From Tubulanus polymorphus (taxonomy: Eukaryota > Animalia > Nemertea): a stretch of 64,000 nucleotides of DNA. This document shows positions 1 to 64,000 of this stretch, piece after piece. Below the pieces are notes generated by a model, which saw only the letters and a program-made list of their open reading frames with translations, did no database searches and was not told the DNA's origin. The stretch covers positions 7,669,122 through 7,733,121 of the forward strand of contig NC_134030.1 of assembly GCF_964204645.1 (NCBI RefSeq), read 5' to 3'. Every line of letters starts with the position of its first letter. Position 1 is the stretch's first letter. A program made the position numbers and the translations under genes.

Positions 1-3000
1 AGGGAGATGAGTCCGTTGTTGACCGTCCATCAGAGTCGAATCAATGCTCATCAGTGTATTACGTCATACTTCGGCAATTAAACCGTAATTAGCCTACAGG
101 AATTAGGCCAATTTATCGATAAATAATTAACTACGCAGTGGTAATTTGACTACTTACAAGATGAGTCCGAAATGGACGGAATGAAATTTGGTGGGTTAGT
201 TCCAAAGGCATCTTTTTTTTTCTGGAAGCCATCGCTAACACCTTGTGACAAAAGGTGAAAATTGTCGTCATTGTTATGCGATCCTATTGTCCATGAAGGA
301 ACCCCAAAGGGATGAGTATAGATCAGCTAAAGTGGCCAAGGTAATCAACGGTAATTGGTCGCCATTTATGGATTAGGCAAGATAATCTTCTAATGCATGG
401 TTCCATGAGCGTTCGCGATAGATATGTGCATATTTCTGCCTACCTCCAGCAACGTGGACAGCTCGACGTTTAATCAAACTTCTACGGTATTTCAAGCCGA
501 TAAAAAAGATTCAAACTGTGATTTTCTTTATTGTAGCGTATCGTATTGATGGGCGCTGTATTAATGATGGTTTTGAACCTGTCCATGGATTTCATCTGTT
601 TACTGAAACAGCAGAATATCCCAATAAATGTACGAACTGGATAAAAAAGGGATGCGTTCACACTTGTTAAGTTTGTTTCCATGATATTTTTGAATAATGC
701 CAATTTTACTTATGTCATCAGGTTTTATGGTTGCTTTAAGTACATATGCGTTCGACACATGGTTCGACACATGTGCGGCCATTTTACCTTGATTTGAATC
801 TAATTGCCCAGAAGTCGGGCCTTTTGGAATCGCTACCAACTAATTTGATGAGACCTTGAATGCGATATCATTGCTATACGTGTGAGTAATAGCCATCTGT
901 CCACGAGGATGTGTTATGTTCGGACAGATGCGGTTATGCAAACTTTTCTTCAGTCCAGTTATAAATTAGCTCGATGACCAAACTGACACCTATCTAATGA
1001 CAACACCTCAAGGCCATTATTTTCAATAGTTGGAAGATGTAATGTATTTCTGGTGATCATTGACCATAAATGTTCATTCATGAGTTTGCTATTGTCAATG
1101 CAATAATAATGTAAATCAGTTATACCTATGATGTAAGGATAATTGATCACCGGCTTTTGGCAGTTGGTACCAATTAATAAAGTAAAGTGAAATCTACCTG
1201 AATTATAGGTTGACAAAGTGATTGCCTCATGTATTCACATTAATTCAATTAGCCTGGCATAGCCAAGTTATTTTGTAATGTGGAAGAAAAGAGGTGGTTT
1301 GCTACCTTTACAAGTGTGTTGGGAGTCACCTCCATGATAAAGCCTGTGAATTTTGCCTTGTCCGTTACCAGCTTTAGGGAAGATACAGTATTGCTGATTA
1401 ACGATAACAAAGTATTGAGGAATAGATAATAGAAATTTCATTTATTACTGGTTTACATGCGCTAATTATAAATTCTTGCAAAGCAGCTATGGTAAAACTG
1501 GTTGTGTTTTGGTCCGGTCTAGGCAATCACTCCATGTTCAGTGACCTTATCCATTCAAAGCATTTTATTTCATTATTTCGACCTTCACGCTCGGAAGCGC
1601 CTCAGCTGTTTTTTATACTTCTGAAGTGACGACGAATTCTTTGCTTACTTTACTAGTGAAAAGTTTCTAGAGAGGAAGTCCATCGAGCGGGCGACTGAGC
1701 GACGTTACCGTCGTATTAATTTCACACCGATGAATGCTATGTTCGGTTTTATTTCGTGTTTGTTGGTTTTACATCGCGTACGATGTTGATTCTTCGTCTC
1801 GTCAGGTGATGCGATTTTCCGGTTAATTCCGTCGGTTTTTCCGCGTGATTTAACGCGTTTGATTGCCGGAAACTGAACGCGACGCGTACCTGAATATATT
1901 TTCACCTGAGACGGCATATGCTGTGGCTGCTGTTTTGTCGATTTATGAATTTGACATTTATCGAAGTTCTACTATATTTGTCATTCAAAAAGATCAAGAA
2001 TTTTCTCAAAACGTTAACTATGACATTTACATGGGATTGAAATGACGATGGACATTATTTTGTGAGTAGGGAGTTTCTTAGAACGTATCACTTGCCACGT
2101 ACGAGAAAAAATTCAATTCAACGATGATGTTGACGGGTTTTTTTGCCCGTCACAATCTACGGAGATGTTCGTTTTGAGTGCCAGTGGCTTGATGTCTCTT
2201 GGCGCACGTTGCCACCTTTAATACACCTGATTACCTGTCTCCTATCAACACGGATCCGTTTCACAGACTATTCCATGGTTTTATCGTGATTGAAAAAGTC
2301 AATTACCACCTTAGGTGGCAAAACGGTAAACGCTCTAATATACGTCTGGTCGAGAGCTTTCGGCTTCAGGTTTCTTCGACCTCTCGTCGTAATTCCGCGT
2401 GAGAATTTTTCAGTCGAGGATCGTAAAGGATGACATCTACACGAGATTGAATGCTGACCCTCCGCTGCAATATTCTGTGTATAAGATTGTATTGTCTAAT
2501 AGGCTGCATATAAGCGTCTAATTCCTTATCTAATGTCCAAAAGTAAAGCTGATCACTCATGTGTATCTAGTGGAAATGCTCATTATTAATGCTTTGTTCT
2601 ATCAAATGTGCTTGTATCAGTACCAAGTGCGACTCGTGATTGCTGTCCAATTTTTGAACTGTTTTTCTTTGTCTTATGCTGTTTAAGTTCATTCATATGT
2701 GTGAATGGATCTTAATAGTTTCTTACTCTCCCCTCACCCCGGTGGTGGCTGTTTAATAAGATGGTTTACGGTAAACCAACGGCGTATCTCTCTCTACCTG
2801 AGAGTGGAGCACTTGTTTTTATTGCTAACTCAATTACCTGAGCTGACAGTCGGGTGTCAGAAGTAGATAGGAGAAAATCACCTGAATGACTCGCGTTGAA
2901 TAAAGATCAAGTAGCAGCGTGAACCGGTTGTCGTGTCACATAGTGTGTTTACTGATAACGTTAGATGAGAAAATGAAGGCAAGATCGGTCTGTTGTCGTA

Positions 3001-6000
3001 AACTCTTACCATGCGACAATGATAACATTACAACTGAATGGATGAAAATGGGGCTCGATGTGAACTATGAGCAATTGTAGATGTGAAAGACTCGCAAACT
3101 GTTTACGTTTTCCTCTCAGTGAAGAATTTAGAATTGGAGACAAATGAAATAGGTCATAAGGCTATGAATTGTTGTGTTTTCAATTACACCAATAACACTG
3201 ACCTATGATTGAATGAAGATAGGATGATTGAATGAAGATTTCTTCATGAAGGTTTCTTCAATTCCCAAATTTTAATTCCTTATATTAGATATGTTCATTT
3301 TAGGGTAGATATTTAACTTAGAAATATGACATACCATTTTATCTGCATCTACGAATTTGCTCAAGACTGTTTAAACAGCTATCAGTACTTCTTAATCTGA
3401 AGATTACAAAGGTGAAAGTTACTATATTTTACTCATTACCGTCTACCCATCAGAGATGAATCAGTCTTCATCAAACTCGACGCAACACTAGATTCTTTAT
3501 CATATAATGTTTGAATAACGGCTGCGGTTATGATCGAGGAAATGAAATATTCATGCAACCACCTGGAGGCTGGTGGCAGCCACAGGGGGACTGATCGTCG
3601 GTCAGGTAGATCGGGGCTGAAAACCTAATCTCTCGCCGTCGTCGCCGCCTCGGGTGAGATTTTGTAAATGTTGCCCAGGTAATCTAATAACCGTATAGCC
3701 ATCGTCATTCATCATTCAAAACATAGCGCTTGTTTTGTCTCGTTGATTGTATCTAATGTCCGTCGGGCGGATTGAATGTCCATTCAGCGGTTATTCAGCG
3801 GGCAATCAAAGCAAAAATATTCACGGCTATATAATTTGAGCGTCTGGACACCATTTTTCCTTGTCACAAGAGTTGATCCGACCTTTGGTTTGTAGCCGTG
3901 CCCCAGAATCATTGCCTAATTCATTCTAATTTTGATAATGCCTTATTCGCTTAAGAAACCTACATAATTCGCTCATTTCACTATTCTTTGGCATTTACGG
4001 TTCTGAAAATTGTTTTATTTCTTCAATTTAGAAACTATGATATTGATCTTTTTAGTTGATATTACCCTATTGATATATCGAGATCTCACCATGAATCGAA
4101 TTGCGATAGTTATATTGATCTATACTACAAAGGGAATATCACGCGGAATATACCGATATTTTGACCGACACACCAGGTGTTGGGGATGTATTTTTTATTT
4201 GTTCCGGACAAAGCATGTTCCGATCTGCTTTGTGTTGCCGTAGCTGGTCCAATCGGTCCATTCCACTCAGTGGCCTGTAGTCGATTGTTCAGTCACCTGG
4301 TCACATGGCCCCTGGACAACAACAATTGATAAAATTTGAATAATCTGATAAATGAAAATCTAGGCCAGGTACCAAATAACGGTGGATGTTTTTCATTTTT
4401 TGATCCTGAGTGAAGTTGAATCGATCAAAAAATTGTGGTCACTAGGTTTTTGAAAATGCCGCGTTGTTCGTGTGATCGGTCCCGTCTCGTCGATGCGACA
4501 AATTTAAACAAAGAACACGCCCGAGTACGATGAATTATCAACAACAATTATTTCTCCCATGCGATGACAAAAGCAATTGAAAAATCGCGCATTAATCTGA
4601 TTTCCTGATCATCCGACAGAAGGGTGGTGGTTTTGGGGCATAGTCTTAATCAATCCCAGCACGAGTAGGTACAAAATAATAAGTCTTTGTTGTTGTATTC
4701 ATTTGACCAGTTGATGACCAGTGACCGAACTGTTTTTGATGCAGGCGGTCATGCTACTTCGCTAGGGTGTCGTGTGTCCGCACGTGACATACCCATTATT
4801 AGATGTTTGTTGCAATTTCGGCCTTTGTGTCTTTAGCATATATTATGTACGTATATGAGCATTTAGCCTAGAGAAACCGGGCATATACAAAAAGAAATTG
4901 ATTCTTTTCTTATTCCTGTGGTGAATATTTCGATTTAATCAAAATTACTCTCTCACCGATGACGATGCGGCCGGCAACCTACTCCAGCGCGAACGCTAAA
5001 TGTATTGTTGCTAGGCAACTCGATTTAATACGCATATGCAAAATCTGATCAAGTTATTTTTTCACCCGGGAAAATACCCTCGAATTTCGAGTCTTAATTA
5101 CGAAACATAAATTTCAACAGATGGGCCTGGCCCTGCGCTAGGGTTGACGGGACTCATTAAAACTTCCCGATTAGAAAGGTGCATTATAATTAAGCCCGGT
5201 CGTAATACCCGAAATAAGTTTATGATCACGTTTTAAAACGTCGATTACTGAAGTTATATCGAATTATCGCGAATTAAACATTTGTCGAATTTTTGCTGTA
5301 AATCTATTATTGCTTGTAATTGGAAGATGAAATGCGGTTAGCCGTATTGCTGTGTCATTTAAATTGGCTCTTCATTCCACCTTACATGAAACTATCGGCT
5401 CTCGGTTTATTAGCTAAAAGGTATCGCGCGGATGGGAGAAGCTCCGCCGGGGAGGTACATCCCCCTGAATACACAAAAGAGACCCAACTCTTTCTGTTGT
5501 TTTAAATACACCCAATAATTATACACCACTTGTGCGCAACCGCGCTCTCCAATGTGAAGTAGAAGCCTGACAGGAAGTTAACAACGGTAGTCAACCTGCT
5601 AATGAAATTACAACGCAAATACAATTACCGTTGATGGGGTCTGTTTGCGGTAATAGTTGTCCCTGGTACCTTGCACAAATAGACGACGACTAATTCCTCA
5701 CCGGAAATAGTGATGACCCGGCAATTTAAAAGGTAGCAATTTACCGGAGAAATAATTACGTCTGGGGGCGCGTTTCGAACACCTAAAACAAACAGCAGAA
5801 CTGTTCATCAGGTCGAACAACTAAACCGGGACAATAAGTAACAAGCTTTCATGACTAAACCTGAGTTATTCAAAATTATTCAATTTCAACAATTAAAACG
5901 AATTCCATATTCCTGCAACTAGATTTAATCCATCCATGACTATACCTAATGGTCAGTTCTCACTTATGTTATCAATATCCATATTTACTGATATCAAAAA

Positions 6001-6069
6001 TGCTTGAAACGCTCACAAGATTACTGACAGTTGGACTTGTCATGGACAGAGTCAGACATGCAGCATACT

Positions 6070-8525: not shown

Positions 8526-9231
8526 ATTTACAATTCAAGACCCTATTTCAGAAAGCAGAAATACCTCACTCTTTCAAACCAGCCTTGAGCTTACTTTAGA
8601 AATTGGGCCTGGGTTTATATTGTTAATTAATCGAAATACTTATCAAATCCGATGTTATATTTGAACTGATTTTTTAACGACCTCCGCCATTTTGTTACTA
8701 ATCGTGTGAAACGGCATCGCGCCCGCGCGAGTGCGCAGCACCGATCGTAATTTATATTCGCCTAAGTGTCGTTTAGTTCGGTGAGTAAACAACGTGAAAT
8801 GGGTAATTCCGGCACTTTCACCTGACTCGCGTGAGATATGTCGGTTAGAGAGGTAAATTACGGTTTCGTTACAAACGACAGAAATTAACCGTCATTAATC
8901 ATCGACAAGCGACTGCTGCTGCCGTGGTGGAAATTACCGGCGGAAAATTAAGTTGTTATATCCTGTCATAAAACCTGGGTTGACGTTCTTGTCGGCGGCG
9001 ATGGTTGATGATAGGTGAGCGGTAAGGAATTGTTACCGATGAAATGTAGTCGCGTCGTCACGAGCGGCGGGCGATGACGAGTACCGATCGGGGATCGTTT
9101 GTTACTCGTCACGGCGCGAGACGAATGCGGGCCCCCGCGTGCGTACGTCCGTCCCCGGTGCGCGAAACAATGTCAGTTCGTTAGGGCTCGTTTAAACTAT
9201 GAATCTTAAACTTTCGATTCTTCGCGCCGAG

Positions 9232-9301
9232 ACCTTGAAGTCTGAATTCTAGATAAACTAGGCGACACCTTGAAGTCTGAATTCTAGATAAACTAGGCGA
9301 C
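9232..9301. repeat. 35-bp perfect tandem duplication
   Basis: accttgaagtctgaattctagataaactaggcgac occurs at 9232-9266 and 9267-9301, with a diverged third copy near 9398-9435. Confidence 0.95.
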
Positions 9302-9703
9302 GTCGGAACGTTTATATATTAGGAAGTCGTTTTGATTACAGCTTGTTGTTCCCATCAGTGTCGGCGTCTTCGTGGAGTTAAGTGTCTGAACCTTGAAACT
9401 TGAAGTTTTCAATTTTAGATAAACTTAGTTGACGTAGGTGACATTGTAAGGAAAATTCATTAAAGGGCTTGTCTTCTCCATCATAGCTTTACTGCCTTGA
9501 CAGTCTTAATGCACCGAACTTTCAAAATTCTATGAAATGATACATTACTCTGTACAAGACATCGATTTCCAGTCGGAATTTGGGGAAATCATGGAAAGGT
9601 TCATAGGTACTTAATGATGATATTAGATGATATTCAAATTACATGTGGCATCGCGTTTGAATTGCATAAGTTTTATGTCCACAGTCACAGTAACATAGTA
9701 TAA

Positions 9704-9803: not shown

Positions 9804-10663
9804 TAAGCTGTCTTCAGTACTCAAGTTGATGCTGGTTTTTTACTCTGCAATTTAGGAAGCAATATTATTCCGACAGTCTGATAGAATCGAGCAACCCGCG
9901 CGGCTTTCATTCTTTCTAATCACTTTCGCGGCAAAAACGAATATCACCATTTTCATCTTCGGGATGCTCTTGTCAGAGTTGTCGAAAAGTATCGTGGTTC
10001 GTAATGATTTTGTATTACTACTGTTACGCTACTACTCCAACCGTTGTTTCGGCTTCGGCGAAAAAAGTCAAGTCGCTCTCCACGTGTCGGCTGTTTAATG
10101 AATATTGGACAGGATGATAATTAATATGCGACGTCGTCATTATTGGAATGCGAAGGTACTTCGTTTGTTGGCTTTCGCATATTTGTCGAACTGCGCCCGC
10201 GCGCGCAAGCGAGCGAGCGAGGAGAGTCGGCCGGGAGAGAAGAAAATTGAAGATCTGGCGGCAGCGCGATTCGAGCACGCGTATGCATTCGTGTTTGTGT
10301 GTACGATGCGAGAGTTGAGATGATGGTGAAATTGAGGTGTATATTAAAGTGATAGTCGAGTATGTTGACACTGTGAGCTATTCTCAAATCGTCGAACGTC
10401 TCGCACGAGATTTCTTCTCTCGTTTGAGATTGTTCGCGAGAATGATTTCTTTCATTTCGCATTTGTATTCGATAGTTCCGAATATCGGTTGACATTTGTT
10501 TTGCTAGTTACGATCTCGTTATAGCTCAATTTCGTCTCGAATCTGTCAATTATGCGATGCAAGTATATTCTTTTTAGATATCGCTGTTGACTGGATAAAA
10601 AGCCATTCTCCAGTGGCGAGGATTTTTGAGTCGTACCGCAGTTGTGGTTAAGATTTGACACTG

Positions 10664-12770: not shown

Positions 12771-13202
12771 TACCCATCATCGGCACAAACATGCTTAAGT
12801 CAAGAAAGTTCTAACATCTATACTAGAAATGCAAATCACCAAATCATGATGTCCAGATTTATTCATCTTTCATATCTAACCCCTGTTAAATGATGCTCAA
12901 TTATCCTTGAGAAGTTAATCTATGGCCCCTTGCGTTGTGTTTATACAATATCAAATCATACAGATACATTTCTTGATTTCACAAATTGTGAGTTTATGAT
13001 GTTCATCTATATTATTGTATAAACATAACCTGAGGGAGCATGGAAGCATCGATTAACTTTTTAAAGGTCATTGGGCATCTTTTAACAGGGGTTAAATATG
13101 GATATGGGAGATTTAGATTTTTGGACCTCATGGTGGGCAATTTGCATTTATGGTATAGATGTTAGAAATTTCTTCAGTCAGGCATATTTTTGAATGATGG
13201 TA
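12771..13202. mobile_element. Foldback element / long inverted repeat (~160-bp arms, ~100-bp spacer)
   Basis: aagaaagttctaacatctatactagaaatgcaaat pairs with atttgcatttatggtatagatgttagaaatttctt, and taacccctgttaaa pairs with tttaacaggggtta. Confidence 0.9.
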
Positions 13203-40957: not shown

Positions 40958-40975
40958 GGGGGGGGGGGGGGGGGG
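40958..40975. repeat. Poly-G tract
   Basis: Uninterrupted G run, with another at ~39146-39158. Confidence 0.95.
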
Positions 40976-45724: not shown

Positions 45725-48700
45725 CTGGGTTTAAACAGAATGGTCTAGCTTACTGGTAAAATGTTATATGTCCGTCGTTTGATCTAGTAGTAATGAGTCA
45801 GTTCAACTCTGAAATACAGGGGAGGTGGGTATGACCTGCACAAAGTCTGATGGCACTCGCTTGATAATGATGAAGTTAAGGAAGTATTTGATGATGATTT
45901 CTGCGTATAAACCTGGCGGGCGATTTATGAATCTTTGACAGCGGCATATAATAAAAACACCGCTTGACTGCTCACCGTTTGTGATGATGCGTTCCACCTG
46001 GATAGTTTGAGTTTTACGTTAGCGCCATTAAAACAGACAGCGCGTACATGCATTGCGCCGCGTTCGAAAGTAACAGTATCCCCGACGGGCGCCGTTTACT
46101 GCAAGGTACACGCAATTATTACCAATAACTGGTTTACCGTGCATCTACCGTGACTGTCCCGGCGGAATGGTATTAAAAATCATCATATCTCGTTGTAGCC
46201 ACCGCCGACGAAAGTTCGCCGCTCGCGATGCGTGCATTCGGGGATATTAATCTGCTGAACAGACATCGAAAAAATATGATTACCGTGTATTTTGTATAAA
46301 GGTGATGTTTGATTAGGCAAAATACATTGTATTGGCGTATTCCTCCCACGGGCTGCGCTCTCGGTTTTTCAGCGTATGAGTAGAATAATAAAAAAAGGTT
46401 ACCGGTTTCTATTCGGGGACGGAAATTGAATTAATGCCATCGTTGCGGTTCCATTTAGAATAATCGAACTATTAACACTGTTCAGCAAAAACACGACGTC
46501 ACGTGTTGTTAAACTTTTCCCCCATTACCGATCTAGAGGTCTACCTCGTTTTTAAATGAAGCCACATCCGTCTTATCACCTTGAGTGGTGCCAGGGAGGT
46601 CAGGTGGTCAGTTACGCTCGAGTGTTTGCCGTAGCCTCGACGGAAATCGCGACGGTGCCCGATGGCGCCACCTTAATCACCGTGCTGGTGTCGGAGGTAA
46701 ACACACTGCTGCAGTCGCGAGTCCCGAAGGTGCCGTTTTAATTGTATCCAATATTCATGTTGAGGTACGGGCGGTTCTGGTAGTAATACTCTCCCGTCGG
46801 GGTCATTAGGCGTTTTACTCATTCAACGATTCTGATAATTTTATAAATATGTTAATTATTCCGATGTTTGTATCGGCGTTTAATTCGATTTCCGCTCTGT
46901 ACAGCATGCATTATGTATGCGCGCTGGTACGTCGGCGATCACCTAAATTTCCTTAAGTGATGGATCGATTCGCAAAGTGCGACGGAGTTTCGACGCTGCC
47001 GTTTCCAAAATAAATCTTGCGTCGATAAACAATTAATGTCCACGGGAATATTAGGCTCTCGTTCTGTAGTAAAAGTTCAATGATGAGTTTTTTTTAATCA
47101 GATCGCAAAGCGTTAGGAATCATCAAAACTACTCTTGGATTAAAGCCTATTTTCTGAATTTTTTGATTGCACAACCAACTGCACCGTCTAGCCTTAGTTC
47201 AGGGAAATTCTTTGCCTATTTTGCAACGCCCATCACTATCGTACAAATGACACAGTCTTATCTGATGCAGATGTTATGTGATTGGACTTTGTGTGAAGCC
47301 ACGATCAGCGTTACGATAATATTTCGTTTTCAGCGACTGATATTCATAAAGGCTGGCGATATCGTGATATCATATCGTGGAAAGTTTGTGTCCGGTTGTT
47401 GTTCAAACAAAATCTGACTCACGCTTGCGAAAAGAAACGTCACTATTTATTGAGTTTGCCGGCTCTTCAGTCCATCAGCAATCTCTCGGGCCGCCACAGC
47501 CATTGTTGCTCGCGATTTCGTAAACGCACTGTATAAACGGAACTGGTTGAGTTTACGGAATTGAGATAACGATTTGCTGTGTGTCCTATTCTCCGACGGC
47601 GACCTAAGGGACGTGGTTAATTTCCCCCAGTCCAGTCGGAGATAAATTAGTCGTCGGTTGGTGGTCTGTCCCGGGGTCAGGTAGGGCAAACCAGTCGGCA
47701 AACAGTCGATTGCATTGCCGGGATATCAAGTTTCTTAATTTGTGGCAATATTATCGTTTGCTTATTATCTGCACCAGGGCTATAAACGTTTCTCGTTTGC
47801 TGTGACATTTTTGTGCGCTGTATTGTGTGCCATTTCATCATTGTATTTATGGTATCTTCTGCTCTGACAAGATATACAATATAACAATTTGTCGACCAGC
47901 GAATGGTTCCTTTCAGACTTTGTTGTCTATGGCGAAGTCTTCTTCGATCTGGTGTATATCGATTTTCCCAGCCCATGGAACTCTCGTTCATTTTCCCAAA
48001 ATCAACTTTGATTTTCTCAATGAGGCTTAAGATTCATAGACCTCTTGTTTCATCTTGTTTTTAGTATTGCTTCCAGCTTCGTCAAATTATCAGCATGGTG
48101 TTATGTATAATCACGGTCAGTTCTGTAATACTGCCCGTGCACTCATCAATTATATTTCTGGATTTTATTGGTCGCTAGATGCACGGGGTAACTGGGTGAA
48201 ATTAGTATTGACAACTTTGATGGATTTATGGTATGTACGTGATTTATGATGGGGTCACTAGAGAGAGAGTTTAATTCAAGATACACTATGTATTTTATCT
48301 GCCGATGAATTGTCGTAGGTTGACCATTCCTCAAGAATGAAATTAATAATTGGGGTTATGCTAATCTAGTTATGGTATCCATTCCAAGAAATGTCTTGGT
48401 GAGAAGTTCTTGTGACGTTTTAGCATAGGCCTTTGCTACCACCTGAAAAACGTTAACTGGTTCTAGATTAAGCCATCTTTCATGATATACCAACGATTTA
48501 CATTTTAATGTCCTGGATGATAATAACTCATTTCGTATCATATTCCCCCTTTTTTGTATGTAAATCAAAAAACATTGTCATTGTTACCAAAATAACAACA
48601 CTCGATATTTGGAAAATTTTCTTGTACGATAACACTGAACTTTTGTGGTCTGGGCAAACGGATACAAGAATTTTGTCAAATGAAACTGCAGATGGCTGAA

Positions 48701-49503
48701 TGTTTGCACGCGTTGATGTTGTTGGATTTTATTGGCGCGCACGGACCACAAACACCCACATCACCGTACATAACATAATTATCTCCTGTTCTAATGACTT
48801 AATGTAACAATTGGTTTGCCGGCGTATTCGTAATTGCCCGGGTACCTCCGAGTGGCCAGCAATCGCCCCGTGGTCCGGCGACTAATTACACCACCTTATA
48901 AATATTTGTCCTCCGCGATGTGATACGAATGGAAGAAATTTTCGTTGCTTGAAATTTTCACGTCTACGTTTTTCACGGCTGTGAACCGTTCTCAAAACGC
49001 TTCGAATAATTTTACTACTATTCTGCAATGATCTAACCGGTGCTAGTTAAGTTGCGATATGTCGGTGGTGGCAGATTGATAATTCAACTTCGGGAACATT
49101 TCGAATCCAGTGGAAATATGGCGAGAATTCCGGCCGCAGGGAAGCATAATTAATTTTTACGTAGTTATTGGGTATTGAATAGGTAAAGTGACCACATGAG
49201 ACAGGAAGGGCAAATAGGCTTGATTGTAACCGTTAGAAGTACAGTGTAGCACTGGAACAGGCTAATTGATCAGATATGCTAATCACTAGCGTGTTGTGGT
49301 CACTCGACCACTCGGGAATTTGTGGGAATGGGCTCGGAATACTGATTGAAAGGTGCGAGGCTCATATTGCGTGGTTGCTTGAAGTAATATATCATCCTCT
49401 GCTATGTCTAAGTTCTATTTCATGCAAACCATTCAGTAGAAGATGCTAAGTTTGCTGAAATTGTTGGAAATTTGAGGGGTCCTCACCAAGAATACAGAAG
49501 TGG

Positions 49504-51769: not shown

Positions 51770-53937
51770 GCTTTTTGAAGATATAACCCATGAATTTTAC
51801 AGAGTTTCACGATTATCGCGAAACCATTTATGAAAAATATCGCTTAACAGAGATATCTTGTCATCGGCTAGTAACTCTGGCGCCATCGTCGCCCGCACCG
51901 CCATCATCTTAATTTGTTTGTGCGCTGATGAATCTCAAATCGTCGATAAAATTACCTGCAATCGATGGCAACGCACGTCGGAAATTTGCCATAAATTCGC
52001 GGACGCTCGTTGAAAAATGGCAGTGATTTACGCGGTATTCATCGACGCCGCGATTTCTTTGCATATTCAATTACGGTAAGGTGACTCGGTGATTAACCTG
52101 CGCGCGCGCGGTAGCGACGACGACCGGCAGAAGAGTTTGCGTAAGCTTCGTTCCGCGGATAGAGGAGTCATCGTGCGGTATCGCGTTCCAGGTAGATAGA
52201 TACCGGCGTTGATTGCTCGAGTGGCAATCGTAACAAACGCTCTCATCAACGTATCCGATGCTGCGGCGCCGATGAATATTGAACGGGATTACCAGCGCAG
52301 ATGATGCTCTTCTCGTGTGGCTGTAACTTCTGCCTACTTCAGACTAGACACACATTGATATTATCTTTGCCGAAAGGGCCTATAATTTGTAGTGATCGCG
52401 AGCCCGACCCAAACGTGGACTGCCAAATCGTCCGTGCCAATGTCTGAAAGCTGAAATGCGATTTATCTTGCATTCTATTAACATCAACATCGTTTAATTG
52501 TAGTTTCAAGTTAAAAAGCTTCCAGTCACCCCCATAAAAAGTTGCCAGGACAGTTTCACTTTAGAGTAAGAAAATGAAAAATACTTTGAAGGTAAACTAG
52601 ATTTTTTTATAAGTAACTTTCGCTACTAGTATATAGTAGGGTGATTAGGTTAATGAGTGTTAGTTTCATCTCATAGAGTATAAGTTATTTCATGTCGAAT
52701 ATTAACTTGAGAATCGTGGAATAGGCCCCAAGTCTATGGATGAGCCCTGCCTACCCCGGGAATGTTAGTGTTGAAATCTTGTACACTCATGTCTCTGATG
52801 CATAGTTTTGATTCATGCCTGGCACTTTTCCCTTACATCATCGCTCTCGAAGTTCTCGTCGGGTGCGCTGTGGTAAATAAGGTGATTATCATATCGCCCT
52901 CGGCATTTTGTCATTATCACAAAGGACGAGAAAAATTGCATCCGGAATTCGATAAGTCAAATAACTTATTGAAATTTTATTCGGTGTCTTTACGTTTTAA
53001 ACAAGGTAAAATCAGATCCGCCTGAATTTCAAATCGCCGCGTAATAAAGAAAGTAGGTAAGGGAAAAATGGAATACATCGCGCTGCTTTAAGTTGTTTTA
53101 TCACTCGGTATCGGTGACGAGATTAACTCGCGTTTTCGTGATGCCGCGAATAATCTCGTCCGATACGTCAGCAGAAATAAAGGTGAATTTTTCGTTCGGC
53201 GGAATTAGATTGCGAATTTGAAACGTCTTGAAATAGGTTGACTCTGCCGTTGATTACTTGAGTACCAGCCTTAAGAAACGTTCTCATCAATCTGATTGTC
53301 ACTGAAATCGTGGCGTCGCATTTTAAATTCCGGTTTTTTTGAACACGCGGCAGTGAAGACAGTGCAGGTAGATTGTGGTGGAGATATCCCAATGCTGAGC
53401 GGTTGACTCTCGTATTCACACTGCTACTCTTTCCTTTCAAATCCCGAGAAACGGAGTAAATTTTTTCATCAATTTTCCCTGAAATTCAACTTTCCCTAAA
53501 ACTTTTCTTCGACATTTCTCAGTAATTTGCCTAGTGAACTATTGTTAGGCTGCTAGCTTCTTAAAGAGTAGCTCCCTACGTTGCCCTTTGACAAAATACC
53601 GGGAACAAGAACCAGAATCTAAACATTTTTCAAGATTGTTTGACAGATTTTGTGTGGTCTTGCCCTGTAGCGGTGAAGTTTTACTACTTTGTATATTTAT
53701 CATTTTGTCATTATACACACACCATAAACTTCTTACATAACTTGTTTGATTACAACATGTTTTTTCAACGTTTTATGACCATAATATCATAAAATATGCA
53801 CCGATCATTTCGAATTGATTATACGTAATTCTTTGACAACTTTAACCCCTTCCCTTCCAGTTCCTATAATCAGTAGTTAGAGGAAATTGGCTTAAATCGA
53901 GCATACTATGATATGATAAGTGACATGATATGACTAT

Positions 53938-54194: not shown

Positions 54195-57077
54195 AATGGT
54201 TATTGCAGCGAGGAAGCTAGATGAATCAAAGGAAAAACTTCTCAGAATTTTTCCGCATTACCGGGTATTGATGTTTCTTTATGAAAGTATTGCTTGTTTT
54301 TTTTTCCTCGCGGAACTATATGATAAGCACTGCCTACGTGGAGAAATGGTTCTTTCACATAGATGATGTTGACATTAAAAGGGGTGGTTGAATAGATTTA
54401 TGGCAAAGTTGACCTTATGCAGTTTCGTAGTACGGCAACATTTGCACCTTGACTGCAAGTAATTATGCGTAATTTGCTGCATTTGATCGAGGAAAATGAG
54501 CACCATATATCATAGTTTTAATGGTAGCATTTCGGATCGGGCCACAAGGTGCGTATATACTCAAACGTTTATTAATGGGAGGTAAATATCAGAAAATATC
54601 AAATGTTAATCGCCGTCAAAAGTGACCTACTTCATCAAGTGAACGTTGGAAGAATTAATGTGATTTTGGTTTCGACAGGCTGTTGTGTACGTGTCAAAAG
54701 ATATCAGCAGATATGGGAAAATGAAAAAAGGTCACATTTAGATTCGCTCTGCGTTTTCATGTGCTCTGGCACAAATCTACGAAAGTGTCAGACGTCAAAT
54801 TTGAGGACTTTCGCCGTTGTAAATAAACTATAATTTTGTACGCAGTTTTTAGTATTTACGACTTAGACGCGCGTTTGTTTGAGAAACGTGAAAAAATGAA
54901 CCACTGTTTGCACTAAAAACAAATGATCTATGCGTAATTACTGTATAAGGTATGTCGACCTGTTGATGTACAATGCTTGGGAAAACAAACCAAGTTTCTA
55001 AGTGCAAGGATACCATATATTGTACGACGTAACCTGTTCGTTCGTCCTCGGTGGCTAAAAAATATTCACCAAATCTGCTATTGCCGCTGCTGCCACTTGC
55101 TAAGAGAAAAGTGCTACAATAATTTTTCTATGAAAATCTATGAAAGAAGATCTGTAGCTTTATAGATAGAATTACAGTCTTATTACTTATAGGCTACATG
55201 TAGTAATGATGAAACAGGGTAGATTATGTGAGATGCATGTTGATCGCTTATAAGGCAAGTTGCGAAATTCATATCTCAGCTTTTCCTATCTATGGTTTAG
55301 TCAGACACACTTATCAACTGCATGGTCCAAACAGGAGGTTATCTCGAAGCTTTTCTATTGTGGTATCATAATCAACCTGACCACGACTGCTATAAGAGAG
55401 TAGTTTCTACTTTGTTTAAGTATTTAACTACTCTGAAAAATTACAAAATACTATCAAAATCAGAATTGTTTTCAGTTCATTTTCAATTAAACCCCTATTT
55501 TTGATGTCAAATTATTCTCATATAAGGTGTAAACTGCAATTGAGCGATATCAGGTAGTCAGGTCTGAACAAGTAGTATATCAAAGCTAGATCAAACTAAG
55601 ATTTTTCCAAATCGTTACTAGGCCTAGATACGTGTACTTCTGTTGTCACAGCTTTGATATTCTCAAGACAGATATCCTTGAATCATGCAGGTATAATATC
55701 TGCAGGAATCGTTATTCCGATTGGACGAATGATTGATCGAACATTGATTGAACGATCTTCGATGGACCGGGGTGAAAAACTTTTTGAACTTCTCGCGCCT
55801 CAAGTCCGACGACGAGCGATTGTTTACTTATGACCGCTCACCGGACGACTTGTCCGAACCGGGAAAACAGGCGAGATTGATCGCGAACCGATCGACGACG
55901 ACGACGCAGATATCGCTGATAGAATGAATCGCGGTTCACAGGTCAGTCGAGTTGTCGTGTCCGAACGTCCCGCAATCGCAACGCTGACAACCATTTGTTG
56001 AACGATCGGGTCAGCGTGCCGACGCAGATTCTCGTCGGGGCCGGATATCGGTTACGTCGTCGACGCGGTGATCACCGGGACCCGCGAAATCATCCGCGCA
56101 GACAAATCTATAAACTTCCTGATTAAGTCAACAATTGACGACGTCGCGAAATTTCTCTTCCGATTTGCGGTCGTGTCGGTTTTTGATCAATTTTTCCGAT
56201 ATAGTTAATCAAGTCGACGGCTGGCTCGCGGTAACGACGACAAAGCGCCGGGGCCCGTTAGTTTCACGGTGGGTTTGTTAGGGAAAACGAACGAACGAAC
56301 GGCGGCGAAGAAGAAGTTTGATACATCGCACGCGGGTCACGGGTCAAAGGTATCAGTGAGAGCAAATCCGGGCTTTTAAGAGAGTGGAGGAATTGATTAT
56401 ATTTTCCACTTGAAATTAATTGGTTCATGATTCATAACGACTCGTAACCAACGGAACCATGAAATGTAAACTCGCTGCTAAATATCTCTGAATTTTTTTC
56501 ATACAAAGTTATAATTCTGTTGACTGTCATGAATTGTCGTAGAGGGGAACGTCTCATCAAGAATTAGCCTATATTGATGCATGAGATTTAGGTTCGATGA
56601 TTTAACATAAAAAGCTTTGATTAATGGTTGACGGCTTTACATTTCTCGATTCAAAATATTCCTATTTATTCATATATAGCCGCAAGCCAACGGGAAAAAA
56701 CGTTCTACATTGAGTTACGTACTTATCTTTTTCTGGTAATTGGAGATGATGGTTTCAGATATACTGCTATCACTACGTATTAATTTACCGATTCTCAGGT
56801 GCCATGTCAATAGATAATCCAAATGCATATCTTTTCTAATCTCTCTTACCTCAATTATCAGTATCGATGCAAACATACCTGGCACATCTCTGGCATCGCA
56901 TACCTGCTGTATTCGTTCATTTTTACCGTGTAGAAAATTCCGTTTTTTCGTGATGAGTCTTGAGTAACCTACGATAGATAAAAACCGTATCTTGCCCCCT
57001 ACCTGAATAGAACTTATCAGTGACTTGTTGTATTTTATCAAGCTTTATATTATTTTTATTAGCTGAATTTGTTTGGA

Positions 57078-57280
57078 TTTGGATCTCATTATAGAGATCA
57101 TCATCAGGTGAGATCGAAACGTCACCTGACGATGATCTCTAGGGTGAGATCGAAACGTTGTGTCTTTTAAATATTTTAGATTTAATAAATAAATTCTGGT
57201 TTTTAATTTCTTTTAATCTGTAAATAGTGGGATTTTATCTTATTATCCGTTCACCACGTTTGAGTGTGGTCATCGTTCTA
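57078..57280 (+). mobile_element. Short Penelope-like/retrozyme-type element with inverted 5' segment
   Basis: Full hammerhead plus AT-rich tail, preceded by an antisense partial hammerhead (57082-57110). Candidate 9-bp TSD ttgtttgga at 57069-57077 and 57281-57289. Confidence 0.85.
57123..57162 (+). ncRNA. Minimal type-I hammerhead ribozyme motif (PLE-type)
   Basis: CAC-CUGACGA-U-GAUCUC-uagggu-GAGAUC-GAA-ACGU-U-GUG, with a GUU triplet and a 3-bp stem I. Confidence 0.8.
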
Positions 57281-57789
57281 TTGTTTGGAGGTATCAGGTG
57301 TTTCTATGTGCATGGTCAATATGTTACGTCTAAGATGTAACTACGTTTTGTTGTTTTGTGCCAAGGTGTAATCAGTATTCCATGACTTCAAAACACTTGT
57401 TTGACTATTCTTTCTTGGTTTAAGCAATCTATTAGTGAGTTTTTGATGTAAATTATGGAGTTCATGCAGCCCGAGGAGGATGATTCCCTATTTCAAATAG
57501 AATAGATATAACTTATCAAAATATCTTATACCTCTTTTGTTTATTGATGATTGATTTTGGACTGTCAAATGCATATTGATGATTTGTGTTGTTTTCAATA
57601 TTTTTCAGATGAATTCATGAAATGTAATGACAAGGCTTAAATGGGGAGACCAGGAGAATCGAAAAATCCAATAGCCATGAACCACCTAGTTATATGCCGC
57701 TATCCTGACGTAGTCACAGTTCACCATGAACAATCACACTTCTGGAACAATCTGTAGTCATCAAGGAATCAGTGCTGTTCCCTTCATAG

Positions 57790-58467
57790 GAACTGTCTGA
57801 GCCGTTACTCTCAATGGAAAAATCCTGCGTGAAACAGTCCGAGCAATCATCTTGCCTGGAACAGGCTGAGGCATTGCCCTCCGTGGACAAGTTGGAAGTA
57901 TTGCCCTGTGTGAAGCCATCAACGTGCGTAGAACAACAGTCTAAGGCATCTCCCTGCATGGAACAGTCTGAGCCATCACCCACTGTGGAACAATCTGGGC
58001 CATCAACTGACATGGAACAGTCTGAGCCATCTTCCTCCATGGAACAGTCTGAGCCATCACCCACTGTGGAACAATCTGGGCCATCAACTGACATGGAACT
58101 GTCTGAGCCATCTCCCTCCATGGCACAGTCTGAGTGGCCATCGCCAGAGCTTTGTAAACCATCAACTGACATGGAACAGTCTGAGCCATCTCCTGCCATG
58201 GCACAGTGTGAGGTGTCACCTTGCGTCGAGCTGTGTAAGACATCAACTGACATGGAACAGTCTGAGCCATCATCAGATATGGTTAAGCCCGAAACATCTC
58301 TTCACATAAAACACACTGAGCCATGTACTGCCATCGAACAGACCAAACCATCTGAAGAGCCATCTGACGCAATGCAATTGACTGGTCCATCATCCGAGGC
58401 TGAACCGGAACCATGGCAAAATGAACCATCTCAACTCACAGAACCAATTATAGATAGTAAGTCCTGA
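57790..58467 (+). repeat. 27-bp minisatellite forming a 217-aa Ser/Glu/Pro-rich ORF (MEQSEPSPT/VEQSGPSTD units); possible exon or pseudo-exon
   Basis: ORF 57814-58467 has 9-aa periodicity. There is a candidate acceptor ctgttcccttcatag ending 57789 and a donor-like GTAAGT at 58457-58462. In-frame stops lie upstream (57706, 57727, 57787). The repeat is certain but coding status is not. Confidence 0.7.
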
Positions 58468-60294: not shown

Positions 60295-63200
60295 AAAAGT
60301 TTCTAATTAGTTTCTAAGTTCTAAATATAAAAGGACACAATCCATTCTATCTAGTGTATTGTAATGACAATTCCTGAATCCACTTTAATACATTTATTGA
60401 AATGTCTCGATACAAATTGAGTTATTGTAATTCAGGCGTTGTTTAGAATTCCCAAACGTTGATAGTCCGTCTGTCCAAGCTGCTGGGCGAATCAAATCGT
60501 CATTGGAGTCCATTCGAGGGTGAATGTTTGGTTAATTATACTGTCTTACAATATCTGAGATCTGGCAGCGTAATCCTCGGTTGGATATGATTTATCATAC
60601 GGCGTATTGTCCTGGAAGGATCTTCCGTTGATCCTCGAAACCTGAGTCACGGGTGGAATATCTTCAGCCCGTAATTACGCGTAGTTTGTTGACTAATAAA
60701 CTTATAACTCACGTTTAATACAAGGGACGCGCGCGCAATATAAGCCGTTATTCTCTGCCGCAGTATTGACAGCATGTGGCTACATGAAGCATCGTTCTAT
60801 CGGTATGCTGTCGTCCGTATAAACGGTCCCGAAGGCTTCGGTAGAGATTATCCTACAAAAAAAATTTTGTCTTGGCCCAGTTCCACGAAAAAGTTTAACT
60901 CACAAAATTTGTGGTTTAGTTGCTGTTGTTTATTTAGTGTTTTCAATGAAGAAAACAATTCAAACCTAGCCATTTACGCTTAAACCTTTTCATAACAATG
61001 GATCCTGGTTCAATGGCTTCACTTGTTTTTTTTAAATGCAATTTCAATTGTTGGTCACTGTTGTTATCTGAGTTGGGAAAAATGGCTCCTGGTAATGATA
61101 TCACAATTTCAGTATGATATTTACAGTTTTTGAGAATGATAGTTATCCCCAAAGTTAAGGATAACTTTGATGTTGCCCACTAACAGTCCCAAAAATGGTC
61201 AATATCAGAGCCTTATCCGAAAAGCACCATTTCAACTTCTAGAACAAACGTTTGACAGATGTTTTCGGGTTGCTATTCAGGGTTTTTGTGAATGGCAGTT
61301 ATCGGCTAAGTCTTAAAGAAGGGTACAAAATTCAAAACTGCAATGGGTCATTATAATACCATCCTCGCGTTTTTATCCTGTCGATGATAAAATAATGGTC
61401 CATCAAACGCGCACGATGACTATACGTCGCACTGTTTCGTAATGACGACAGCCCATCAAGCGTAATTTGTTGCCCGCTTTGTCTGAATCATGCAGCAACT
61501 GAATGCCGCCTGCGTATGATGTCATCTTTTCTATCAAAACAGGTGTCATTTTGTCATAGATTCCATAACAATTCGGTATTATAGGATGAAACGTGGATAA
61601 TAACTTTATCAGAACGGGAGGATTCCACCTACATATGTAGCTTACTGGCTGATCACGGTAGCTCGGTTTCTCCGTTTAAAAAATCTGTCTGCCTCGACTC
61701 ATGGAAAATTGAGTTGAAGAGTTTAATTCTTCTGTAATAAGCCTATATCTGATGGTAGAGTGTGTTCAAAAATCAAACTAATTGAATTTGTTTTCATTTG
61801 GTCCCCTAGATCAACAGCAAGTTCAAATGAAGCCCCCCAATATCTAAAAGATATGCTTTATTGTTTTTGTCTTGAAATTTGCTCGTTCTCTATGAACAAA
61901 TTATATATTTTAAATCCTAAATTCTAAATATTTTCTAGCTTCTTGCCCTTGAGAATTTATCATATACTTATTCATTTGTTCCTTTCATTTCCTGACCATT
62001 TTTTGTAAACTCGAATATCGAATTTCAATCACTTTTGTGGATAGACAAATTCGCAATAATTCAAGTTATGTAATTGGCAATTAGAACATCGAGTGTATTA
62101 TCGTCGTTTAGTCGTGTAGATCCTTTGAAAAAAAATGACAGGCTTAGTTTTAGTCGGATTTTCCACGGCATTGACCCCGACGTAGCTCATTCATTCGTTC
62201 GGGTTAACGATGACTCAGCGTATTTGAGACCATTTACTCATTTAGACTGATTATAATTGTTCTTTTTAGCATACTCGCGGGTTCTCTCTCTCTCTGTGGC
62301 CGGCGGATGGAATCGACGCAGGGCCGTCATGCGGAAACACGCGTTTGCCATCCGTCGGTATTCACTTGTTCATCCGTGCAACACGAGAACCGGCATCTAC
62401 TATTTTATTACAACGAATTATGATATACGCCCGCCTTGCCTTTGACGCATAATGATAGTTTTGTACTTTTCACCTTTTTACCCTTATTGACTGAATACTG
62501 ATTCATTCAGCTTTCTTACTTGGGGGGAGGGGATGGTTGGTCATCGTTCAAATTTCTTTTTCTAGGCATCGGAAAGGCCACCCTGTAGTCTTCACGACAA
62601 TATTTTACTATTTCCAATTTAAACTGTAACTTGCATCTGAATGTGAAATCTTAGATTCAATAAGTATACGTGTAACATAATGTACTACTTTTGAGAACAG
62701 CTTCGGGGATTTTGAATCAATGGTACAGCCTTTGCTTTCCCAATTTATTCCCTCCTTTTTCGTCTGTTGAATATGATCCATTTTGCATTTCGTAATACCC
62801 GAAAAGCAAAAAACAAAATCAGCGTTTGGATAATAATGAAATTAAGATTTCGACGAGGAAAACTTGTTTCTCTCGTCCTTATCGATTGTCATACGCGAAT
62901 TAGAAACAACGTAATTAAAATCGCTGTCACCGATATAAAACTGCGATGTTCAATTAACTCGTATCAATCCTGAGATGACAGTTTCATCAGCGGTTATCTG
63001 CTATACAGCTATAAACTCAGTGCACCGCTCTCTCAGGGCCTGCGCGCATTCCGGATGGGGGGAAAAAAATGTTGGAAATCGTAACACCTAAACTATGCGC
63101 AGTGGACTGTTCGTTGTATTTTTGGACAATTTTGAAGAACATCCTTAACCTAAAAAGTGTTTAATTAGAAAGAAATGGGTGTGCAGCTTTTACAAGATAA

Positions 63201-64000
63201 GTCCCATTTAGTAGACTAGGGGTTTCAACAGTATCCATTGAGAAAATGAAATCTCTGTTCAAAATTTACTTTACACGGTACAACCAAACACTGGACATCA
63301 CGAAAAGATTGCACTACAAATTAAAACCCTTTATGCTAAAATTGTTGAATAAACTTCGTCCTGCTCATAGCCTTAGAAGCCAGCTCAATATCCCGAAAAT
63401 TTTAAGTTTATTATAGTTATTATGACAAAGAATGTATACAAAGAAGATAGTGTAAAGCAATTTTTTTCAAAGTTTGAATCCCGATTTCAATTTCACTTCA
63501 CTATTTACATCACTGGAAATTCTGAAAATATCATAAACTCTTGTTTCCGGTGCTATATTCGGGTATCAGTGTATTCAAGTTTATTGCACAAATTCCTAAA
63601 TGCTTGTGTATGCGATTATACCTGTATTCATTTGTTCGCATATAAGACTAACTGTTTGCCATCTTTCCATGAACCCAATTTCCACCGCGTCTTCAGATAG
63701 CAAACATCATCATTCCAGCGGTGTCATCGGGGTTCGTTCGTCGAGATTGTTTTCATCGCAGGTCTCCGCCGCGAGATCCGACCAGTAGTGACTCAGTGCA
63801 TCGTCGTTCAGTCACCGATTCGTACGCGATAACGACAAATTACCCGAGCGCTTCGTCGTCGTCTCTCTCGTACCTTCATTCCGGCGATATCTCGGCAGCC
63901 GAGCGATTCTAGCAATTACGCGACACGGGCCTATCCCGGCGGCGTGTCACGACCCGTGAAAGCGCGCGCGGCGCGGAGTCTTACGATGCGTAATTTCGAC

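Follow-up and report, generated by a model that had tools for sequence, protein, structure and literature searches.

The DNA analysed here (the window, a stretch of 64,000 nucleotides from the ribbon worm Tubulanus polymorphus) is an irregular mosaic in which CpG-dense, single-copy islets and CpG-poor spacers alternate about once per kilobase. This mosaic runs through positions 1-64000, with an overall G+C content of 40.3% and a CpG observed/expected ratio (o/e) of 1.19. The alternation is real, its spacing is a characteristic scale and not a strict period, and it is only partly a transposon effect. Most likely, the mosaic records local germline methylation and not a regular chromatin lattice. 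Our best explanation, proposed tentatively and with not quite an even chance of being right, is that the islets would be unmethylated and CpG-island-like, and separated by methylation-prone spacers that accept transposons, in a kilobase-scale mosaic without lattice order.

The CpG mosaic

After smoothing over 150 bp, the window divides into rich (28%, at least 6.5 CpG per 100 bp), mid (26%), low (29%) and very poor DNA (17%, fewer than 2 CpG per 100 bp). The number of CpG per 200 bp has a variance of 41.8, about 5-fold that of homogeneous first-order Markov sequence (8.07 ± 0.64). Depending on the threshold, 49-63 rich blocks are counted, with a median length of 340-450 bp and centres lying on average 1.0-1.3 kb apart (coefficient of variation of the spacing 0.44-0.51), and islet density is about 0.8 per kb. 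Islets measure 150-900 bp, with CpG o/e of 1.5-2.1 and G+C of 0.41-0.58; spacers measure 0.3-1.5 kb, are AT-richer than islets and have CpG o/e of 0.3-0.9. Islet G+C is 0.46, against 0.33-0.41 outside. The contrast is specific to CpG, as the rich state of a hidden Markov model (HMM) differs from the rest in CpG o/e (1.88 and 0.91) and hardly in GpC (1.06 and 1.01). Across the window, CpG o/e correlates with G+C only at r = 0.40. Samples of 10 kb from the genome span CpG o/e values from 0.45 to 1.59.

An earlier sequence-only reading had proposed here a heritable alternation of methylated and protected chromatin, about 1 kb in scale and fossilised in non-coding DNA. Its five hand counts (28, 3, 27, 1 and 1 CpG) are exact, the 11 rich blocks that it listed are all CpG-dense (6.7-11.7 CpG per 100 bp, o/e 1.28-2.08), and its estimate of 50-60 cycles spaced by 0.7-1.5 kb is matched by the number and mean spacing of the blocks given above. 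It was also right that the rich blocks are not copies of one another, as they are single-copy and have no BLAST matches among themselves, and that G+C alone does not make the pattern: positions 57961-58200 have 52.5% G+C and one CpG, and GpC is flat. GC correction and repeat masking, which it had proposed as controls, were both run and the mosaic persists after each. As for the fossilised alternation itself, position-dependent CpG loss at sub-kb resolution stands, and regularity falls: the coefficient of variation of the spacing is about 0.5, lengths and gaps do not compensate one another, and spacings are unquantised. A period at the nucleosome scale is absent too: from 150 to 250 bp, a range that includes 165-200 bp, the Welch spectrum stays flat at 0.8-1.3 relative units. 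Nor is the general idea new, since CpG islets left amid methylated, transposon-bearing DNA have already been published for other animals (PMC12582260; PMC8857917; PMC8286816).

CpG-dense islets

The following islets are referred to below. Coordinates here and in later lists are window positions, and no feature carries a strand.

8652-9303: islet, 69 CpG in 652 bp, single-copy in the sampled genome
9909-10533: islet, 56 CpG, holding a 124-aa open reading frame (ORF)
17891-18691: islet, 80 CpG in 801 bp, with a high-copy repeat directly after it
20231-20845: islet, 67 CpG, holding a 162-aa ORF
31120-31484: islet bordering a MITE duplicate that retains CpG
33368-33701: islet, first of four successive stripes in the sequence-only reading, no other genomic copy
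34115-34606: islet, third of these stripes, single-copy
35411-35731: islet, single-copy
36377-36726: islet, single-copy
37830-38258: islet, 47 CpG
43299-44075: densest islet, 97 CpG in 777 bp, o/e about 2.1
51820-52313: islet, 55 CpG
55733-56375: islet, 83 CpG in 643 bp

BLAST found no match to the rich blocks in the 364 kb of genome that were sampled, and the blocks searched genome-wide proved to have one copy each. Judged as CpG islands, 34 of the 44 rich blocks of at least 150 bp attain a length of 200 bp (the longest has 801 bp), and the o/e threshold of 0.6 (Gardiner-Garden and Frommer) is far exceeded, both in the listed blocks (1.28-2.08) and in the HMM rich state (1.88). Block G+C ranges from 0.40 to 0.56, and most blocks lie below the G+C threshold of 50%, the HMM rich state having 0.477.

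Open frames in 18 of 20 blocks are no longer than those in composition-matched Markov sequences. The ORFs of 9909-10533 (128 open codons, p 0.045) and 20231-20845 (167 open codons, p 0.04) are marginal against the composition-matched model, each p value being uncorrected and each block one of the 20 tested. No significant Pfam match was obtained for these two ORFs or for 24 others, taken from the window, from its flanks and from CpG-rich sample loci, and the eight longest ORFs in the 20 kb past the window end have none. Searches of the whole window with Rfam (gathering thresholds) and tRNA scans found no RNA genes. Among CpG-free k-mers, enrichment reaches about 2-5 fold at most and none survives multiple testing, and distances between CpGs show no helical or other preferred spacing beyond 3 bp. 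An excess of AGGT is only apparent, because AG/CT is depleted generally. The densest islet, 43299-44075, is complex, non-repetitive and non-coding by the ORF test, and contains homeodomain-like and CRE-like words. Neither motifs nor ORFs nor RNA families point to a function of the islets.

Public reads comprise three runs from one study, one of which resembles the assembly's own data, whereas two look like low-coverage DNA of a second sample. Over a stretch of 5,901 bases, the two sequenced individuals present three clean differences, all of them between CG and TG/CA, and two of the three fall within islet 36377-36726. Since islet o/e is about 1.9 and not about 1, protection from decay alone is insufficient and a CpG-favouring force is needed, such as selection on CpG, conversion biased toward CpG, or an AT-biased drift under which CpG mutates less readily than other C/G.

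CpG-poor spacers and repeats

The CpG-poor part of the window contains both single-copy DNA and repeats.

997-1385: very poor single-copy block, 2 CpG in 389 bp
18851-19257: interspersed repeat of about 400 bp, at least 1295 first-look candidates genome-wide, forming the CpG-poor stripe after an islet
33781-34100: spacer, second stripe of the sequence-only reading, single-copy, no terminal inverted repeats or target duplications
34700-35011: foldback MITE with k-mer depth about 17,900 (flanks about 33) and at least 1295 first-look candidates
35061-35328: spacer, fourth stripe of that reading, 1 CpG, single-copy
37437-37830: very high-copy short repeat in a CpG-poor stripe, k-mer depth 18,000-67,000
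45282-45501: interspersed repeat under a very poor block, at least 73 candidates
46000-49490: single-copy tract, CpG-dense grading into CpG-poor, no detectable repeat
55365-55578: interspersed repeat under a very poor block, at least 243 candidates
57727-58353: 27/81-bp minisatellite, G+C about 52%, almost CpG-free, containing the GC control of that reading

Recognisable repeats occupy 14.9% of the window, with CpG o/e of 0.63 against 1.28 elsewhere. Window-wide they account for 35% of very poor DNA and only 0.9% of the rich class. For the 32 kb that were compared with the whole genome, their share is 18% of very poor and 12% of low-CpG DNA. About two thirds of very poor DNA is single-copy. 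No repeat was detected in the first 6 kb of the window; for 900-2000 and 2900-6050 the search extended to the whole genome. The 37 recognised repeat intervals are all located outside the rich class, which contains 158 repeat bases against 2,701 expected (none of 5,000 circular shifts reaches the observed value). Depletion extends beyond the repeats, with 2.8-3.3 CpG per 100 bp within 100 bp of them and 6.9 at 300-600 bp (null 4.8 ± 0.5); flanks at 30-150 bp have 3.68, against 5.19 ± 0.52 (p = 0.0006).

Were transposons the only cause, poor stripes should be copies of dispersed families, but five poor blocks and several tracts of kilobase length exist only once. Striping should also disappear once repeats are removed, but the variance-to-mean ratio of CpG, 4.29 overall, is still 3.76 with repeats and 100 bp on either side excised, and 3.55 in repeat-free stretches (22 kb without a second genomic copy). 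There are no terminal inverted repeats or target duplications around the five single-copy poor blocks, and no transposon protein domains in ten longer ORFs scanned from long poor tracts. Two long ORFs at 57727-58353 are due to the minisatellite.

Position-dependent loss of CpG

Loss of CpG can be followed in transposon copies, in particular in two neighbouring ones.

30483-30831: old MITE copy of a family of about 320 bp with tRNA-T-arm-like inverted termini
30835-31044: tandem partial duplicate of the 3' part of this MITE, adjoining islet 31120-31484

The majority sequence of the family has 23 CpG in 328 bp. The copy at 30483-30831 keeps 4 of 21 alignable consensus CpGs and 12 of the 21 are now TG or CA, with non-CpG transitions at 10.5%. 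Between the two neighbours, eight CpGs are present only in 30835-31044 and none only in the upstream copy; at four of these eight sites the family majority is CG. In this single comparison (n = 1), position and not transposon identity decides CpG loss. Over all repeat alignments, TG or CA stands opposite 37% of CpGs, and transitions affect 10.3% of C/G sites outside CpG. A CpG-dense duplication elsewhere (o/e 2.35) has, by contrast, transitions at 8.7% of CpG and 9.0% of non-CpG sites, without CpG hypermutability. Hypermutability ratios of MITE copies are heterogeneous (0.6-4.7), and their age-adjusted CpG loss falls as regional CpG density over 600-1200 bp rises (rho about -0.43, p about 0.02); hypermutability does not follow the flank over its nearest 150-300 bp. 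A pairwise relation between asymmetry of CpG retention and flank CpG (rho 0.32-0.46) was discarded as pseudo-replicated in favour of the per-copy analysis. Beyond arithmetic CpG loss there is no excess of TpG/CpA (1.07-1.16 in very poor DNA, 1.06 and 1.11 in rich), and conditional TG and CA ratios are 1.04-1.21 across class and repeat sets; TG/CA is no commoner in poor than in rich DNA, and there is therefore no fresh deamination footprint.

These data support a dependence of CpG loss on position at sub-kb resolution. The genome has a toolkit for methylation, comprising DNMT1, a DNMT3-type ADD domain and TET: DNMT1-RFD and C-5 methylase domains share a strand within 9 kb of contig 7, the ADD domain is on contig 1 and Tet_JBP on contig 4.

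Origin of the mosaic

In spacer and transposon DNA, CG is lost to TG or CA faster than other C/G is, which is not so in CpG-dense DNA, and two adjacent homologous copies can differ sharply in CpG loss. We propose that spacers and the transposons that they accept are methylated in the germ line, now or formerly and at least intermittently. Islets would be kept unmethylated, probably under constraint, as CpG-island-like and plausibly cis-regulatory elements. Transposons would accumulate only where insertion is tolerated, and would thereby deepen the troughs and contribute part of the ~1-kb scale.

Alternatively, old and short CpG-poor segments derived from transposons might break up uniformly CpG-rich single-copy DNA at intervals of about 1.2 kb, single-copy poor DNA being relics beyond recognition and position-specific host methylation being unneeded. 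The exclusion of all recognised repeat intervals from the rich class favours this, and very poor DNA is similar in composition whether single-copy (o/e 0.33) or repeat-derived (0.24). Many recognised copies, at 62-75% identity, are close to the detection limit, a family with at least 1295 first-look candidates escaped the 364-kb sampled database, and excision of repeats with 100 bp on either side removes the negative autocorrelation lobe at 500-600 bp. We nevertheless consider the proposal unlikely, though not far-fetched: recognisable repeat makes up only the above 18% of very poor and 12% of low-CpG DNA in the genome-wide search, the 22 kb of repeat-free DNA are nearly as mosaic as the whole, neither the five single-copy poor blocks nor the ten ORFs of long poor tracts bear transposon hallmarks (inverted termini, target duplications or domains), and the tandem duplicate shows that CpG loss is set by position and not by transposon identity.

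Three further proposals start from periodicity or from the richness of the islets. A heritable germline structure of chromatin or methylation, repeated every ~1,170 bp on present-day coordinates, could dictate where CpG is kept, where it decays and where transposons insert or survive; the 1,170-bp component would then be real over at least 84 kb, with transposon starts and single-copy CpG troughs sharing one phase. The strongest spectral line does lie at 1163-1185 bp, both in the window as a whole and in either half of it, and again in the independent 20 kb of right flank. Its power over 104 kb is 46.2, against 25.0 ± 5.3 with blocks and gaps shuffled (p = 0.003, post hoc), and over the window plus right flank (84 kb) 52.8 against 27.1 ± 5.8 (p = 0.0007, the region being post hoc); in the window alone, the line of the CpG signal has p = 0.039 against the same shuffle. 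Phases of 4-kb segments cluster (R = 0.52, and none of 300 phase-randomised controls reaches the observed coherent power), the repeat indicator alone peaks at 1163 bp, repeat starts are phased on the period of unique DNA (Rayleigh p = 1e-4), and the line stays with repeats masked in place (26.3) and vanishes with repeats excised (1.7). However, no more than 5-7% of the variance belongs to the harmonic, block spacings spread broadly over 0.5-1.5 periods and are neither quantised, compensated nor autocorrelated, and a nucleosome-scale period is lacking. Rich-block centres alone give no lattice (p 0.15-0.76), the left flank is incoherent, the best period varies between 785 and 3,499 bp among single 10-kb pieces, and a 1,170-bp peak is missing from 16 random 10-kb loci. 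In addition, the tests were chosen after the line was seen, and the one on repeat phase is not fully independent because CpG depletion reaches past the masked ± 50 bp. Such a structure seems improbable to us, and its single shared phase equally so. The phase-coherent compositional line at 1,170 bp might also betray an ancient tandem array of ~1.17-kb units diverged past recognition, but base identity at lag 1168 equals background (z = -0.7), BLAST and Tandem Repeats Finder detect no inter-unit similarity and no tandem repeat longer than 81 bp, and excising later transposon insertions destroys the line rather than sharpening it. This origin is scarcely credible, and a cryptic tandem array or satellite is largely refuted by the identity autocorrelation. 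Finally, the islets could be recurrent short gene-conversion tracts biased to G/C, especially to CpG at CG/TG mismatches, with ~400-bp blocks gaining GC and CpG, the rest drifting AT-ward and methylation being minor. Protection from decay alone cannot give islets that are both GC-richer than their surroundings and beyond o/e 1 in CpG, typical gene-conversion tracts are near the islet blocks in length, and the three clean differences between individuals all lie between CG and TG/CA. Yet hotspots could by no means be as dense as the islets (~0.8 per kb), GpC shows no enrichment (1.06), and CpG-specific transposon decay together with the one-sided duplicate indicates a loss process and not gain only; we regard conversion as very improbable.

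The islet o/e of ~1.9 and the weak coherent component at 1,170 bp both lie outside our best explanation, that of unmethylated islets between methylation-prone spacers.

Comparison with known systems

The islets resemble the CpG islands of vertebrates, orphan and intergenic ones among them, in size (0.2-0.9 kb), in being CpG-dense, GC-richer than their surroundings and transposon-free, and in clustering in non-coding DNA (PMC8286816). The two differ in that CpG is not depleted globally in the background of the islets (o/e 0.3-0.9; mean of the window 1.19) and that the islets have an o/e of ~1.9, above any neutral expectation, a G+C mostly below 50% and a density of ~0.8 per kb. CGI-like sequences of invertebrates are understudied (PMC8286816).

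In transposon-driven CpG depletion, CGIs persist via counter-selection of transposon insertion (PMC12582260; PMC7431005). The islets are likewise essentially transposon-free, and copies in the window are CpG-depleted relative to their family majority, with an effect reaching ~100-150 bp into host flanks. That model, however, concerns heavily methylated vertebrate genomes, whereas the CpG-poor DNA of the window is mostly single-copy, and the mosaic remains where recognisable transposons are absent. Transposon-targeted methylation, as found in cnidarians and other invertebrates (PMC8857917), would explain the CpG-specific decay of copies, which here would lie in a CpG-rich and presumably unmethylated domain; unlike in that system, decay within one family is heterogeneous and follows regional context, and an adjacent duplicate escaped it. 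Classical mosaic methylation of invertebrates opposes methylated gene bodies to unmethylated domains (cited in PMC8286816). The spread of o/e among 10-kb samples (0.45 to 1.59) and the presence of DNMT1, DNMT3-ADD and TET are in keeping with it, whereas the alternation is sub-kb, in DNA without detectable genes, and not at gene-body or multi-kb scale.

In the honeybee and other Hymenoptera, CpG is over-represented in unmethylated DNA, for which no agreed cause is known. The window likewise has AT-rich, presumably unmethylated sequence in which CpG o/e is well above 1, but belongs to another phylum and has its excess in ~400-bp blocks, not in whole genes or isochores. Huff and Zilberman reportedly described in 2014 a nucleosome-linker periodic methylation, with a period of ~165-200 bp, in some unicellular eukaryotes; this is a periodic, chromatin-imprinted pattern, as the proposed lattice would be, and its one-nucleosome peak is absent here.

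Significance

The mosaic should not be ascribed to transposon peppering alone, nor to a lattice without a genome-wide, shuffle-controlled test. A lattice, if true, would be supranucleosomal and written in the DNA, and no description of this kind was found; a literature search likewise found no nemertean methylome. If the islets are unmethylated and constrained, they would form a very dense CpG-island-like array (~0.8 per kb) in the non-coding DNA of a ribbon worm. The finding would then bear on CpG-island biology, transposon exclusion and local methylation at sub-kb scale in a spiralian, and would provide a map of candidate regulatory modules obtained by sequence only. The islet o/e of ~1.9 also reopens a question unsolved in the honeybee, namely what enriches CpG in unmethylated DNA.

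CpG composition of the region

The window (contig 6, 7,669,122-7,733,121, of the 268-Mb, 77-contig Tubulanus polymorphus assembly) has a G+C content of 40.3% and a CpG observed/expected ratio (o/e) of 1.19, and its CpGs are distributed very unevenly. The alternation of CpG-dense and CpG-poor blocks described in a sequence-only reading is confirmed as a whole: all five hand counts of CpG were exact on recount, the eleven rich blocks listed there are all CpG-dense (o/e 1.28-2.08), and thresholding of the whole window yields 49-63 rich blocks, with a median length of 340-450 bp and a mean spacing of 1.0-1.3 kb. The variance of CpG counts per 200 bp is 41.8, compared with 8.07 +/- 0.64 in homogeneous first-order Markov sequence. 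A two-state hidden Markov model separates a rich state (CpG o/e 1.88, GpC 1.06, GC 0.477) from a remaining state (0.91, 1.01 and 0.384, respectively). CA, CC, CT, AG, GG and TG are all depleted in rich blocks, an arithmetical consequence of 45% of C there preceding G; after conditioning out CpG, the other dinucleotides are alike in all CpG classes.

Across the sampled genome the distribution of CpG o/e is broad and unimodal, ranging from 0.45 to 1.59 at the 10-kb scale. Windows of 300 bp with o/e >1.6 make up 18-19% of the region studied and 11-13% of random loci. The eight longest open reading frames (ORFs) in the 20 kb past the window end are without Pfam match. At another locus of the same genome (L008:996-4739), an uninterrupted ORF of 1,247 aa with zero Pfam domains coincides with a 3.7-kb extreme CpG tract of about 10-14 CpG per 100 bp.

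Spacing of the CpG-dense blocks

A regular lattice, the strong form of the original description, is not demonstrated. Spacing of rich blocks is broad (CV 0.44-0.51), without quantisation, compensation or autocorrelation; no nucleosome-scale CpG period is present, and block centres form no lattice against a null of shuffled blocks and gaps (p 0.15-0.76). Yet a weak component of about 1,170 bp is present: the window, both its halves and the independent right flank all have their strongest CpG periodogram line at 1163-1185 bp. Shuffling of blocks and gaps gives p = 0.039 over the window alone and p = 0.003 over a contiguous 104-kb region; the value of 0.0007 for window plus right flank refers to a region picked after the data were seen. 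The phases of 4-kb segments cluster, and the positions at which repeats begin keep phase with the period taken from unique DNA; the line persists with repeats masked in place and is lost with repeats excised. Neither the left flank nor any of 16 random loci shows it, and it accounts for only 5-7% of the variance. An eroded tandem array was excluded as its source, because base identity at lag 1168 has no counterpart to the line.

Transposons in the CpG-poor DNA

Repeats were sought by self-comparison of the window, by comparison with a 364-kb genome sample and, for 32 kb of the window, by a search of the whole genome. The 37 intervals found cover 9.5 kb (14.9% of the window). Among them are two minisatellites and short fragments of MITE or SINE type (80-650 bp), and identity to other copies is typically 62-85%. 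The intervals have a CpG o/e of 0.63, compared with 1.28 for the rest of the window, and only 158 repeat bases fall in the rich class (2,701 expected; 0/5,000 shifts). Repeat flanks are also CpG-poorer than random positions (p = 0.0006), CpG density being low within 100 bp of a repeat and peaking at 300-600 bp. Transposons therefore occupy and deepen the troughs. A negative autocorrelation lobe at 500-600 bp disappears once repeats +/-100 bp are removed.

Several individual elements were recorded. The very poor block at 12774-13200 is a 427-bp near-palindrome (69% self-complementary), probably of foldback type. A short repeat occurs in three copies, 74-95% identical, at 39363-39502, 57078-57280 and 31601-31735. 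Rfam at gathering thresholds returned zero hammerhead in the whole window.

Repeats make up 35% of very poor DNA across the window and 18% in the genome-searched part. The following CpG-poor features are single-copy in the genome:

33781-34100 and 35061-35328, stripes singled out in the sequence-only reading
997-1385, 3132-3403, 41890-42107 and 61740-61944, blocks
2900-6050, 22510-24900, 40020-41700 and 46000-49490, kilobase-long tracts

The striping outlasts removal of repeats, with an overdispersion of 3.55 in 22 kb of repeat-free DNA compared with 4.29 overall. The contribution of transposons to the mosaic is thus substantial but not sufficient. The single-copy poor DNA may itself consist of transposon relics past recognition, and the local genome database did miss one repeat family whose first-look candidates number at least 1295; no terminal repeats were found at the edges of five single-copy poor blocks, and none of ten longer ORFs scanned in the long poor tracts carries a transposon protein domain.

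CpG decay in repeat copies

Over all repeat alignments, TG/CA stands opposite CG at 37% of CpGs, compared with 10.3% transitions at other C/G sites. The MITE family of 30483-30831, with elements of ~320 bp and a first-look count of at least 1183 candidates, has a majority sequence of 328 bp with 23 CpG and 52% GC. Its inverted termini (window copy and loci L022-L050 elsewhere in the genome), GGTTCGAATCC and its complement, read like a tRNA T-arm. The window copy has kept four majority CpGs and turned 12 into TG/CA, with 10.5% transitions at non-CpG C/G.

The 3' part of this copy is tandemly duplicated at 30835-31044, adjoining the islet (CpG-dense block) at 31120-31484. Both duplicates share derived changes, so the duplication arose in place. 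Since then the two copies have come to differ at eight CpGs, each missing upstream and present downstream, with none in the reverse direction; the family majority is CG at four of the eight sites. The pair (n = 1) shows a boundary of CpG loss sharper than 200 bp and independent of sequence homology.

In 29 other MITE copies the CpG transition excess is heterogeneous (ratios 0.6-4.7). Adjusted for age, it is smaller in copies whose wider surroundings (600-1200 bp) are denser in CpG (rho about -0.43, p about 0.02), and it shows no such trend with CpG density in the closest 150-300 bp. At a random locus (L018:4122-8646), a ~1.9-kb tandem duplication with long open frames, 85% identity and a CpG o/e of 2.35 at just 39% GC has equal transition rates at CpG (8.7%) and non-CpG sites (9.0%).

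All three clean single-base differences between two sequenced samples (36462, 36665 and 36965) are CG<->TG/CA, two of them within a CpG-dense islet. Second-sample contigs (public runs X2 and X3; window 33300-39200) favour GC- and CpG-richer parts and omit the poorest stripes, probably a coverage or library bias rather than biology.

A possible role of methylation in the islet-spacer mosaic

The genome encodes the following methylation toolkit:

contig 7, 2,913,142-2,922,362, DNMT1-like gene (RFD and methylase)
contig 1, 27,608,276-27,608,413, DNMT3-type ADD domain
contig 4, 4,714,037-4,719,706, TET/JBP dioxygenase

An exon-by-exon genome search found neither DNMT2 nor a second methylase-domain locus. 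Together, the MITE decay, the one-sided duplicate, the equal-rate CpG-dense duplication and this toolkit fit a reading in which spacers and transposons would be locally germline-methylated and islets not. The earlier proposal, a fossilised ~1-kb alternation of methylated and protected chromatin, is borne out in part: position-dependent CpG decay (duplicate and MITE copies) and the toolkit favour it, and a regular lattice is not demonstrated.

On the sequence evidence, the best reading of the mosaic is an alternation of CpG-island-like islets (CpG o/e about 1.9), which would form a dense, unmethylated and transposon-free array, with spacers that would be prone to methylation and accept transposons. 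Such a mosaic resembles the models of PMC12582260 and PMC8857917, but on an unusually fine scale, and bears on the question of invertebrate CpG islands (CGIs) raised in PMC8286816.
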